The notes below the pieces were generated by a model, which saw nothing but the letters and a program-made list of their open reading frames with translations, was not told where the DNA came from and did not search any database. Below, piece after piece: positions 1,390-62,425 of a stretch of DNA of 64,000 nt. How positions within the stretch are numbered: position 1 is the stretch's first letter; each line of letters starts with the position of its first letter. The stretch comes from Selaginella moellendorffii (lineage: Eukaryota; Plantae; Lycopodiophyta). Location: the NCBI RefSeq assembly GCF_000143415.4, contig NW_003314280.1, positions 1,781,549 to 1,845,548 of the forward strand. The letters are read 5' to 3'. The translations under genes and the position numbers were made by a program.

Positions 1390-1851
1390 ATGGAACTCAA
1401 AGTAATCCTATGCAATTCTATCTTGATATTAATGCTCATCCAACAAGCAAAATCTTATTCAGCACCATCACTCCAGGATTGTATTGACACTTTTCACATT
1501 AGAACTAATGTTGGAGATTATTGTAATTGTGCATCATTAGTTTGGATCCAATTTGCTCTAAATAGATTCCAGCCTGGTACCTATTCTTATGTAATTGGCA
1601 CCTTAGGCATCTTTCTAACGATTGGCTGGTTTCATGGAGGCACACGTGCAGACTTCATAGAGGCCATTGAAGATATCTGGGAAATATGTTTAGCTCACAA
1701 TGAAGGTGGAGGAGTGATTGTACTTAGAGATGGATCTTTTATGTTACGGGTAGTGCATGCTCGAGAAGACTTAACAATATTTTCAGAAACTATTAAAGTA
1801 AATAATCCTTTCATAATGGAGTTGCCTGATAAATGTAGGGATCTACCATGA
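1390..1851 (+). CDS. Small secreted Cys-containing protein, 153 aa, intronless; possible KP4/Ecp2-like fold
   Basis: Signal peptide (MELKVILCNSILILMLIQQAKS), intact ORF, intact paralogue at 61973-62425 (~80% aa identity by manual count). Confidence 0.85.
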   Translation: MELKVILCNSILILMLIQQAKSYSAPSLQDCIDTFHIRTNVGDYCNCASLVWIQFALNRFQPGTYSYVIGTLGIFLTIGWFHGGTRADFIEAIEDIWEICLAHNEGGGVIVLRDGSFMLRVVHAREDLTIFSETIKVNNPFIMELPDKCRDLP

Positions 1852-2113
1852 TTGTACACATTTGCCTCTAAGCCTTAAATCTAAACATCTCTTTACTTTC
1901 TTCTCAGATTCAAAGCTGACGAGCTAGCAACGTACCGTTTGCACGAGAGAGAGGTCGGAGACAGTCTCGTTACCCACAAGAGCGCTGAGACGTGTAGAAA
2001 ACGCATAGAATGTCGGGAAATCGGATATACATTCCTTTCTCGTACAAATGGTGTTCTCCTCAATTTATCATTCACAATAACGCACATGCTGACAAGCGGC
2101 TATGGATCTGGAT

Positions 2114-4244
2114 TCACGATCTGGGGAGCAAGAAATCCAGATTTGCTATTGAATATGTCCAAACAGCAAGTGTAGCAGCACAGTGTTGGAGTTGCCTCGG
2201 TGAAAGCTTGTCAACTGTGTCAGATTGGGTATGGTGATACCTTTGCGTAAACACGGACGAGTGAGTAGAGAAGAGCTGGAGATAAAATTAACATACCAAA
2301 AGTATCCACTAGTTCCAAAGTTGACGTCTGGATATGGAGGATTGCTGAAGGTTTTGCACGGATTGTTTGATAAGCTCCCAACCCGTGGGTCCAGAGTCAC
2401 TAGGCTTCCACAAGGAACTCCAGCATCACACTGAAGATATGTATGTCATCTCGGTGACAAGAAAAACAAGACATGGAGATGCTTACCATGGGTGAAATGT
2501 CCGTCCCTATGCTCTGTCCACTGACATTTCCGGATCCAATCCCCGCCAGAAAAGCTTTTCCGATCTAAAGAGGCATTTTACGAAGTTGCAGAAGTTCTTC
2601 TTGAAGCTGTAGTTACTGTACCTGTTCCAGAATGGACCGTGCAGCTGTGGAGCCTTGAAAAGAAATTCCCAATGGAGTGAAAGTTCCTTCGTCAGACTCA
2701 ATGGCTATACTCGTCCTGGTTTCATGATAAGAAGAACAGGAAGAAGAGAGGCTGAGACTTACAACTTCGACTCATGCTTGTGGTTAAGGTAGTATTGCTC
2801 AGCACCTTTTGCACCATTTTCTTCATTCACAAACAGCACTGCTCGAAGCGTACGGTGTGGCCTTAGCTTTAGCTGGTGAATAAGTCGCACCACCTGGAAA
2901 ATGCAAATGGAATGAGCTACAACATCCTCCGTAAAAGAATAAAGAATACCTCCCAAGAAACAAATGCTCCCCCAGCATCATCCATTGCACCATCTGCAAT
3001 GTCCCAACTGTCCATATGGCCTCCAAAGACGACCACCTCGTCCGGTTTTTCTGCACCTTTGATCTCCACGATCAAGTTTCTGGAAGGAACATTGCAAGTT
3101 TCATCAAACGAAACCAATAGAACCGAAAGTGACATACCGCGAAGGCTTGTCAGGTAACATATGAGCCTGCAACGACGCATTTCATATATACACAGAATGA
3201 AGTTTCCAAGACTTTTACCTCCATGTAAAGCTCGATGACAATCTCTTGGCCTCGAGCTTGCATTCTTGCTAGCATTCTAGAGTCTTCCACGGATATCGCA
3301 GCAGATGGTATTCCAGTAGTTCTAGTGGCACCGGTGTGAGGAGTCTATAAGAAAGAGCTATGTTAATTCACAAAATTTCCTCTTAAAGAAATAATCACCT
3401 GTAAACCATACGGTGTCATTGAGTGAACGAGAGCGGCAACAGCACCATACTTTTCGGCCCGTGTCGCTCCTAGTGTCCTGTACTTGACAGTGTTTGAGTA
3501 GCCTTGATCAAAGTTTACATTGTAGACGACGATCTTTCCTGTTCAGATGTGATTTCCTCAAGGATAAAAGAACCGAAAAAAGTGGACTGGTCTTTCAGTT
3601 TACCTTGCACGTCACTGGCTCTTTGATCAAGTTCTTGGAAGGACGAAACGACAATGGCCTTTGCAACCAATGACTTCTTTCCCGGCGTGCCAACGCTCAT
3701 GCCTAGACCGACCATATGAAGCTCCTTCACTCTGGGAGATAAAAGCCTAGCAAACTCCCGGCCACGTACCCAGGAAGGAACCATTACGTACTCTTCAACG
3801 ACAGATAATCCATCCTTCTCCATCTCTTCCTGCGATGAGGGAGGTTCAGCTTAAGCAAGGAAAAAGAAAAAAGAGAGAGAAAGGCTTACTCTTGTCCAAT
3901 CTAGAGCGTTCTCGAGAGCATCGGAGCCACTGAAGCGAGGTCCAAACGTATCAGTCATGCACGCAATCCTCTCGTAAACAATACTAACGCCATCGTGAAA
4001 ATGAGAAAACCTGGCCAAAGAAAAGAAGGCACTCACTCGGAAGAGAATGCCGCATCGATAATGGCATCGGCATCGTCCTTGGCCTGGGGCGGGAGCAATG
4101 GCGTCGCTTCCGATCGCCGTGGTAGCACTTGGGTATGCTGCGAATGGCGCCAACAATCAAGATCAAGAACAAAGAAACGCCAATTGAGCTTACCTGATAA
4201 GCACTCACCAGCACGAGGATGGCGACCAAGAGCCAAAGCGCCAT
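2114..4244 (-). CDS. CPQ: Carboxypeptidase Q-like (plasma glutamate carboxypeptidase, peptidase M28) secreted metallopeptidase, multi-exon
   Basis: Signal peptide MALWLLVAILVLVSAYQ; motifs WVRGRE, GGHMDSWDIADGAMDDAGG, FVNEENG, AIESDEG, YHHTQSDTVDKL...LPRS*; short GT-AG introns. Confidence 0.88.
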
Positions 4245-4738
4245 CTCCCCAGGAAGAACTAAACCCTGCCACAGTGAAGGCCTGCAAGGAATAAACAGAA
4301 CCGTGCGCCACTGGATTGGACGGCCCATATTTGCGCGGAAAAATTTGAAGTTTACATCACAGGAAATAAGAAACCTTTACGTTTGGTTATTAGTACGGCA
4401 TTGTCTCCTCCCTGTGTACGAAAGACAACAACAACAACACTAGACAAAGATATCCTTTTCGATCTTCCGTGTATGATGTGTCTGGGCATCGACATCATTC
4501 CGGGACCAGCGAAAGAGCGAGAAAAGAGTATCGATAATTTTTAGATGCCACTGCGCTGTTCACTGTCAGTGGAGACGCGAAACAAGGCAATCGAAAAAGC
4601 CGAGAGAGAAAAAAAGAGAGAAAAGAGCTTCCGCCTTCCACTTACCTCCCGCAATATCGTCGTCAAAGCGCTTTGCGTCGGTGGCTGCTAAAGTACCTCT
4701 AGTGTGGTCTCGTTAGTTGTGGACTCTCCAAAATTTAA

Positions 4739-61867: not shown

Positions 61868-61915
<48 letters not shown>
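61868..61915. repeat. (TA)n microsatellite adjoining an assembly gap
   Basis: Direct reading. Confidence 0.9.
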
Positions 61916-61920
<5 letters not shown>

Positions 61921-61972
61921 AGAAGATGGTTTATTTGAAGATTTGTATTCCTTACTAAAATAAAATTTAATT

Positions 61973-62425
61973 ATGGAAGGAAAAGTGATCCTATGCAATT
62001 TTATCTTAATATTAATGGTCATCCAACAAGCAAAATCATTTTCTGCACCATCATTCCAAGATTGTATTAACACTTTTACTATTGCAACTAATGTTGGAGA
62101 TTATTGTAATTGTGCATCATTGGTTTGGCTCCAATTTTCTTTAAATGGTTTCCAACATGGTACTTATAGCTTCAGAATTGGTACTTTAGGCATCTTTTTA
62201 ACAATTGGCTGGTTCCATGGAAGCACACGTGATGACTTTATAGAAGCTATAGAAGATTTATGGACAATATGTTTAGCTTATAATGAAGGTGGAGGAGTGG
62301 TTCTACTTAGAGATGGATCTTTTATGTTACGGGTAGAACATGCTCGAGATGAGTTAAAAATATTTTCAGAAACTATCAAAGTAGATAATCCTGAGTTGCC
62401 TACTAAATGCAAAGATTTATCTTGA
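61973..62425 (+). CDS. Small secreted Cys-containing protein, 150 aa; paralogue of 1390-1851
   Basis: Intact ORF, signal peptide, all cysteines conserved with the 1390 copy. Confidence 0.85.
   Translation: MEGKVILCNFILILMVIQQAKSFSAPSFQDCINTFTIATNVGDYCNCASLVWLQFSLNGFQHGTYSFRIGTLGIFLTIGWFHGSTRDDFIEAIEDLWTICLAYNEGGGVVLLRDGSFMLRVEHARDELKIFSETIKVDNPELPTKCKDLS

Follow-up and report, generated by a model that had tools for sequence, protein, structure and literature searches.

The DUF26 domain consists of two helices on an antiparallel sheet with three disulfides, including a C-8X-C-2X-C motif. It is said to be specific to land plants and yet is structurally close to the fungal lectins LDL and Y3; ancestrally it was a secreted protein of a single domain, the family is prone to tandem expansion, and secreted single-domain DUF26 proteins occur in Selaginella moellendorffii, so that a plant family of this fold is already present in the lycophyte (Vaattovaara et al. 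2019, PMC6368629). A second fold class, KP4, has ECP2/HCE2 as a structural subgroup; its KP4 signature comprises four conserved cysteines, three glycines and two W/F/Y motifs, and moss KP4 genes are listed for it (De Guillen et al. 2025, PMC12382754). KP4 is also listed as an ascomycete-to-moss transfer (Yue et al. 2012, PMC3493653), and the moss genes are a precedent for such a fold class in non-seed plants. Here we describe a family of small secreted-type proteins encoded in a 64,000-nucleotide stretch of the S. moellendorffii genome (the window; assembly GCF_000143415.4, contig NW_003314280.1, positions 1,781,549 to 1,845,548), which an original prediction had likened to fungal KP4/Ecp2 effectors. 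With moderate confidence, we read it as a real, lineage-restricted secreted family with a fold like that of DUF26/Gnk2 and Y3/LDL, for which carbohydrate binding in the apoplast in a defence-type setting would be the likeliest role.

The window holds two intact members, both intronless and both read without interruption on the forward strand: copy 1 (1390-1851) encodes 153 amino acids plus a stop and copy 2 (61973-62425) encodes 150 amino acids plus a stop. BLASTP aligns the two proteins with 121 of 153 identities (79%), corresponding to 29 substitutions and one 3-residue indel. A dead third copy lies on the reverse strand at 28205-28701, with homology to the coding sequence (CDS) at about 28205-28582; it resembles the family over 135 amino acids at 42% identity (tblastn, E 2e-25) and has lost its start codon and acquired in-frame stops and several frameshifting indels, while its upstream homology to copy 1 is kept. 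The original prediction had placed both intact open reading frames (ORFs) exactly, had recognized the dead copy and had counted by hand about 29 differences in 150 residues, which agrees with the alignment. Its description of the copies as intronless and AT-rich is also borne out, since no copy requires an intron and the GC content is 0.33-0.37, with GC at third codon positions (GC3) of 0.21-0.28 in copies 1 and 2 against 0.39-0.86 in neighbouring genes. By inspection, the N termini of copies 1 and 2 have a classical signal-peptide look, with a hydrophobic core followed by A-K-S before Y/F-S; in copy 1 the signal-peptide-like part spans residues 1-22 (1390-1455, forward strand), and the mature domain would start at 1456.

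A third intact paralogue is found on scaffold GL377575.1 (segment L001), where an uninterrupted ORF at 12155-12586 encodes 143 amino acids from its ATG. The protein is 35-38% identical to copies 1 and 2 and keeps the length, a signal-like N terminus of its own and the motifs FH.GT..DF.EAI.DIW..CL and DGS..L.V. It also keeps all five cysteines that are invariant in the family alignment (C31, C45, C47, C100 and C149 of copy 1, with a spacing of C-X13-C-X-C...C...C), and the conserved cysteines claimed for the window copies extend to a distant relative. A hydrophobic N terminus with a small-residue cleavage-like site can be discerned by inspection in all three intact members and in one dead copy. 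About 5 kb upstream of the paralogue stands a second dead copy, readable through its signal-peptide part and then disrupted by frameshifts and a stop. The family in S. moellendorffii therefore numbers at least three intact genes and two dead ones, with dead copies at both loci, and the earlier notion of a small secreted-type family evolving by birth and death is supported by these intact and dead copies and by the local segmental duplication described below.

The ORF of the paralogue is hidden in the annotated model EFJ30363.1 (SELMODRAFT_409220), a 554-aa "hypothetical protein" that, judged from its sequence, is a chimera in which fragments of a neighbouring leucine-rich repeat (LRR) receptor kinase are joined to two thirds of the small ORF. 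The model occupies the region 10001-12944 of L001. Its kinase-like part ("HGNLKASNVLLDGSSLVARLS...") closely copies a stretch of the LRR receptor kinase at 13075-16487 of the same segment, and its C-terminal part consists of the two thirds of the secreted-protein ORF, the model splicing away from that ORF before its true end. Copies 1 and 2 are absent from the protein collection and are hence unannotated, so that one S. moellendorffii gene model (EFJ30363.1) is wrong and at least two are missing. A literature search returned nothing on the locus tag SELMODRAFT_409220 and nothing relevant on Selaginella and KP4.

Both intact copies of the window stand tail-to-tail with peptidase sequences. Next to copy 1 lies an expressed M28/carboxypeptidase-Q-like gene (CPQ; PF04389; 1900-4300, ends approximate, reverse strand), with its stop at 2114-2116, an RNA-confirmed 56-nt intron at 2237-2292 (joint CT..AC) and the next splice junction at 2431. 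Next to copy 2 lies a decayed duplicate of the CPQ 3' half (62902-63807, reverse strand), 69% identical, with its metal-ligand motifs altered from HMDSWD to HMYSWE and from DDAGG to NDVSG. For the ORF block itself, the identity between 1362-1899 and 61949-62469 is 82.7%, and the small ORF and the tail-to-tail CPQ were duplicated as one block. The identity of the CPQ duplicate (69%) equals the synonymous-site identity of copies 1 and 2 (69%), the duplicate having decayed at a neutral rate.

Between copies 1 and 2, the proportion of synonymous sites that differ (pS) is 0.313 and that of nonsynonymous sites (pN) is 0.109, giving a ratio of nonsynonymous to synonymous substitution (dN/dS) of 0.29 by the Nei-Gojobori method, with 38.5 nonsynonymous against 30.5 synonymous changes (Fisher test against neutrality, p 5e-6). 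The S. moellendorffii v1 assembly contains both haplotypes, and the allele of copy 2 on the second haplotype (segment L002, 2798-3247, minus strand) is intact as well; the two alleles differ by 10 substitutions and no indels (pS 0.053, pN 0.014, dN/dS 0.26), and between the same haplotypes the non-coding flank next to copy 2 differs by 5.5% mismatches and by 9 indel events over about 975 nt. In copy 1, a contig from run X1 (RNA/DNA) carries two variants, 1701 T>C and 1794 T>C, both of them synonymous. In the comparison with the GL377575.1 paralogue, synonymous sites are saturated. Taken together, the ratios of 0.29 and 0.26, the lack of indels, the synonymous variants and the conserved paralogue demonstrate that the encoded protein has been under purifying selection, at three time depths, in keeping with the earlier claim that selection preserved the ORFs while the CPQ duplicated along with them decayed.

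Expression was assessed in three raw RNA-seq runs of S. moellendorffii, with about 12% of each being read and the reads placed on positions 1000-2500 at a likeness of at least 80%. At this threshold, none of the three runs gave any RNA depth across the copy 1 CDS, so reads resembling copy 2 are missing too. The CPQ neighbour, which serves as an internal positive control for RNA coverage, reached a depth of 10-40x in the same runs, with a transcript end about 70 nt downstream of the copy 1 ORF. One spliced CPQ contig from run X1, which also has 9 nt inserted at 1905 and 14 nt deleted at 1968, continues antisense to position 1643 and so reaches into the final third of the copy 1 CDS; this stretch is either a long CPQ 3' untranslated region (UTR) or the product of merged or overlapping convergent transcripts. 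Other RNA assemblies contain 13-15% of the query words, a share close to that taken up by the CPQ 3' UTR part, from which alone these matches appear to come.

The zero depth over the CDS, the missing annotation of the small ORFs in the reference genome and the CPQ contig running antisense into copy 1 are all points in favour of regarding the ORFs as something other than functional protein genes, either silent relics or sequences conserved otherwise, for example because the convergent CPQ transcript overlaps them at its 3' end. We consider this very unlikely given that the codon signatures are specific to the reading frame, with low dN/dS at two time depths and no indels between haplotypes, and that copy 2 has kept its ORF despite its dead CPQ neighbour. 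The 35%-identical paralogue likewise keeps the ORF, the signal peptide and the five cysteines in another genomic context, and the family's truly dead copies show a very different picture. Expression limited to particular tissues or to stress would be the likeliest way to reconcile the zero reads with selection on functional secreted-type genes. The original prediction had named the combination of no expression and a dN/dS of about 1 as evidence against the family; the lack of expression was found in these three runs, but the ratios are 0.29 and 0.26.

In sequence searches, the family is so far known only from S. moellendorffii. No Pfam family was found by hmmscan at E<=10 for copy 1, copy 2 or the GL377575.1 paralogue. 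Against PDB sequences, neither a single sequence nor a profile found more than chance matches, at E of about 1 and none to 1kpt, and a word-index homologue search was blank both for the single sequence and for a 3-row profile. An exhaustive phmmer search over 1.84 billion representative proteins returned two matches only, one of them EFJ30363.1, the paralogue of the same plant genome. The other, a bacterial 1118-aa repeat protein, was matched over 30 residues and shares only "LAYNEGG..VL" with each repeat; it was dismissed as a chance, low-complexity match. Among these representatives, no sequence relative, fungal or other, exists outside S. moellendorffii.

A first AlphaFold run on the full-length protein, with a 2-row alignment, gave a model with a predicted local distance difference test (pLDDT) of 36 and a different secondary structure, and it was discarded. 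A second run, with AlphaFold2, used the mature domain and an alignment to which the distant paralogue and in-frame stretches of the dead copies contributed; its best model reached a pLDDT of 61.9 and a predicted template-modelling score (pTM) of 0.56. The core of this model comprises residues 4-103 in the order beta-alpha-beta-beta-alpha-beta-beta, followed by a disordered tail.

Foldseek searches of the PDB with this model returned at the top Gnk2 (ginkbilobin-2; E 7.5e-4), the DUF26 domains of PDLP5 and PDLP8, Y3 and LDL, and further down Zt-KP4 (E 0.011, template-modelling [TM] score 0.33) and KP4 (E 0.28, TM 0.30-0.35). Exhaustive comparison with 48,161 chains by VIA-align gave Y3 at Z 8.9, PDLP8 at 8.1, LDL at 8.1, PDLP5 at 7.8 and Gnk2 at 7.4; lower in the ranking were an archaeal tRNA synthetase chain (2du3, Z 6.1) and Zt-KP4 and KP4 (both Z 5.8), with the rest at 4.5 or below. 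A further comparison confirmed this; over both, KP4 and Zt-KP4 lie at Z 5.8-6.3 and the rest at 4.6 or below. Ranks six to eight in the structure searches include KP4 (1kpt) and Zt-KP4 (8acx). In the ESM Atlas shape search, plant PF01657 clusters lead with TM scores of 0.55-0.59 by query, and an Ascomycota hypothetical cluster is also listed (TM 0.51/0.43). On this model, a two-helix, five-strand alpha/beta sandwich of the DUF26/Gnk2 and Y3/LDL type is the most likely fold of the domain.

The family resembles DUF26/Gnk2 proteins (PF01657), and in particular single-domain secreted CRRSPs such as ginkbilobin-2, in having a signal-peptide-like N terminus followed by one small domain. The predicted arrangement of two helices on a five-stranded antiparallel sheet is also that of DUF26/Gnk2, in a model whose pLDDT is only 62, and with this model the structural matches to Gnk2 and the PDLP domains stand at Z 7.3-8.1, next to the Foldseek and Atlas values given above. 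Y3 of Coprinus comatus (5v6i) is the best match of all, with a root-mean-square deviation (rmsd) of 3.5 A over 100 residues, and LDL of Lyophyllum decastes (4nds) superposes with an rmsd of 2.7 A over 87 residues. Both fungal lectins are small secreted single-domain proteins, as is predicted for the Selaginella family; identity to them is 13-17%, which is not significant, and no sequence search matches them, the likeness being at the level of the predicted fold only.

Several observations weigh against assigning this fold and role, besides the absence of RNA over copy 1 and the apparently CPQ-only word matches. No Pfam Stress-antifung match is obtained at E<=10, the C-8X-C-2X-C motif of DUF26 is not found in the family alignment, and the five conserved cysteines lie at other positions than the six cysteines and three disulfides of DUF26. 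The failed first model and the spread of the second run point the same way, as two of the five models exceed a pLDDT of 50 and the other three fall below 40, from an alignment of 5 rows and one species. According to a note on the structure-search tool, Z values of 7-9 are also reached by models without true relatives. The Selaginella proteins further differ from DUF26 in carrying an additional tail, disordered and about 28 residues long, that has a terminal cysteine. Because the sequence profile and the cysteine signature both failed, the family is described as DUF26-like in its predicted fold and is not filed as a DUF26 member.

Much of this would also be expected if the genes were real and selected and the DUF26-like model were an artefact of a shallow alignment, the family being a true orphan, old and de novo or diverged beyond recognition, with another fold and function. 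We regard this as possible though rather unlikely. A first model at pLDDT 36, three of five second-run models below 40, the lack of any relative in Pfam, PDB sequences or the protein database, a cysteine pattern that fits no known family and a best Z in the range of 7-8 that the tool note calls typical of models without a clear match all speak for it. Against it, two aligners find as best solved chains one group of small secreted cysteine-containing lectins and toxins, into which only 2du3 (Z 6.1) intrudes, and an independent third library, the ESM Atlas, puts DUF26 first too; in addition, the DUF26 fold is that of secreted plant proteins, consistent with the signal peptide. Should the fold prediction fail, a selected orphan gene family would still be left, with a built-in neutral control in the form of the co-duplicated CPQ pseudogene.

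Under the reading that we favour, a secreted family with a DUF26/Gnk2-Y3/LDL-like fold, each single-exon gene would encode a signal peptide, a domain some 100 residues long and, at the C terminus, a floppy tail ending in a conserved cysteine. The signal peptide would direct the protein to the apoplast, where the lectin-like sandwich may bind carbohydrate, as Gnk2 binds mannose, and a defence-type or cell-surface role can be proposed by analogy with Gnk2 and with maize and fungal lectins. Production would be limited to particular tissues or conditions. The family turns over by local segmental duplication and pseudogenization, with purifying selection holding the small ORF while the peptidase copy decays.

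The original prediction went further and proposed that a KP4/Ecp2(HCE2)-type antimicrobial effector gene had been taken up from a fungus and then diversified by birth and death. Beforehand this was reasonable given the moss KP4 transfer, which is accepted as fungal-to-plant (PMC3493653, PMC12382754), and several results lend it colour. KP4 (PF09044, 1kpt) and the HCE2 (PF14856) member Zt-KP4-1 (8acx) are small secreted alpha/beta-sandwich proteins like the family model and rank among its top structural matches (Z 5.8-5.9 with an rmsd of 4.3-4.4 A over 96-97 residues for 1kpt; Z 5.8-6.3 with an rmsd of 3.7-3.9 A over 93-94 residues for 8acx). The best single structural match is a basidiomycete lectin, Y3, and the Atlas shape search lists the ascomycete cluster mentioned above. 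In the ESM Atlas feature space, copy 1 has fungal clusters as its neighbours (0.82-0.89), Hce2 and Kp4 clusters among them, and in one neighbour at 0.88, 12% of the members carry Hce2. Finally, the GC3 of copies 1 and 2 is far under that of the neighbouring genes.

Nevertheless, we judge this fungal transfer to be highly improbable. The likeness to KP4 holds for the broad alpha/beta-sandwich class that includes KP4 and HCE2, and DUF26/Gnk2, Y3 and LDL are closer (Z 7.3-8.9); the KP4/HCE2 matches are weaker than those to the DUF26/Y3/LDL group, and to plant DUF26 in particular, by 1.5-3 Z units, with Foldseek TM scores of 0.30-0.37. Membership in the KP4 or Ecp2 families finds no support, as the Pfam Kp4 and Hce2 models are blank for the family at E<=10 and the five-cysteine pattern differs from the cysteine and glycine signatures of KP4/HCE2 (PMC12382754). 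No protein outside S. moellendorffii matches in the HMMER scan of the 1.84 billion representatives, and the profile word search is blank too, so the claimed acquisition has no fungal sequence relative behind it. The feature-space lead to fungi was rejected, as all values lie below the tool threshold of 0.9 and the lead vanished for the divergent paralogue, which gave bacterial hypothetical clusters at 0.84. As to base composition, the GL377575.1 paralogue has a GC3 of 0.52, like its neighbours, and the low GC is therefore local to the AT-rich stretch and not a trait of the family. With no fungal sequence or Pfam match, a weaker KP4 fold match and a language-model lead that was not reproduced, horizontal acquisition is left without positive evidence.

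The surroundings are also those of a normal gene-rich region and not of a foreign island, because ordinary nuclear genes share the window: the C-terminal part of Rpb2 (38808-39404, forward strand), a methionine gamma-lyase-like gene (50160-50762, forward strand) and a glyoxal oxidase gene, GLOX (52133-53785, reverse strand). The GLOX ORF encodes 551 amino acids and is an exact S. moellendorffii protein, with a 550-aa allele (EFJ26956.1) on another scaffold.

Upstream of copy 1, the region 1210-1389 (forward strand) is shared with copy 2 on haplotype B and with copy 3 and is a candidate promoter on sequence grounds. It includes a conserved block of about 25 nt, "ACATTGGATTATTAAGTCTAA", present ahead of copy 1, copy 2 (haplotype B) and copy 3, and a TATA-like "CTATATAAAC" occurs at about 1351-1360 upstream of copy 1 only. 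A scan for promoters and terminators of bacterial type was uninformative for a plant gene. Downstream, the flank 1852-1899 (forward strand) is conserved in copies 1 and 2, meets the 3' end of the minus-strand CPQ transcript and is probably the 3' UTR of copy 1.

Upstream of copy 2, an assembly gap occupies non-coding positions 61768-61867 and is followed by a (TA)n microsatellite (61868-61917); it stops 105 nt short of the ATG of copy 2. On the second haplotype (L002), this site is free of N and is bridged by about 160 nt of ordinary collinear upstream sequence, including the conserved block of about 25 nt. The other assembly gap, 17836-17976, is remote from every copy, and neither gap touches one. 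Around copy 2, allelic divergence is unusually high: 61893-64000 and L002 1181-3327 are about 9-11% apart (5.5% substitutions plus many indels), compared with about 3% over 42161-56082, and a rearranged or inverted stretch lies at about 56-59.5 kb.

The window has some further features. A 251-nt direct repeat, 83% identical, is found at 17977-18227 and 27233-27483, its first copy beginning exactly at the right edge of the gap at 17836-17976 and its second standing about 700 nt away from copy 3, the pseudogene. At 22767-26518, a 938-bp unit is present in four head-to-tail copies, which share 98% identity across the 300 nt compared; the array may be a tandemly amplified part of an element or a satellite, and it directly adjoins retroelement gag/protease ORFs at 21544-22518 (zf-CCHC, RVP_2). 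As to the transposable-element debris described earlier, these retroelement ORFs lie at 21.5-22.5 kb and not directly beside the copies of the family. A 719-aa open frame at 7661-9820 (reverse strand, GC 0.56) has no Pfam match and overlaps other long frames at 5.9-9.1 kb, next to a GH17+X8 glucanase gene (5161-6870); it may be an artefact of GC-rich overlapping frames or an unannotated gene.

DUF26 proteins (CRRSPs, CRKs and PDLPs) are among the largest extracellular protein families of land plants, and a lycophyte family with the same predicted fold, a signal-peptide-like N terminus and clear purifying selection, lacking both the sequence signature and the cysteine motif, would be a new comparison point for the origin of DUF26. 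A more specific proposal, which we hold to be unlikely, is that in this family a lycophyte has retained an independent branch of the DUF26/Y3/LDL lectin fold that lacks the motif, either a pre-DUF26 relic or a sister lineage of DUF26; if true, it would bear on whether DUF26 and the fungal lectins are related by common origin, transfer or convergence. With this family, a model genome would also gain a class of unannotated proteins that are candidates for lectin or defence roles in the apoplast.

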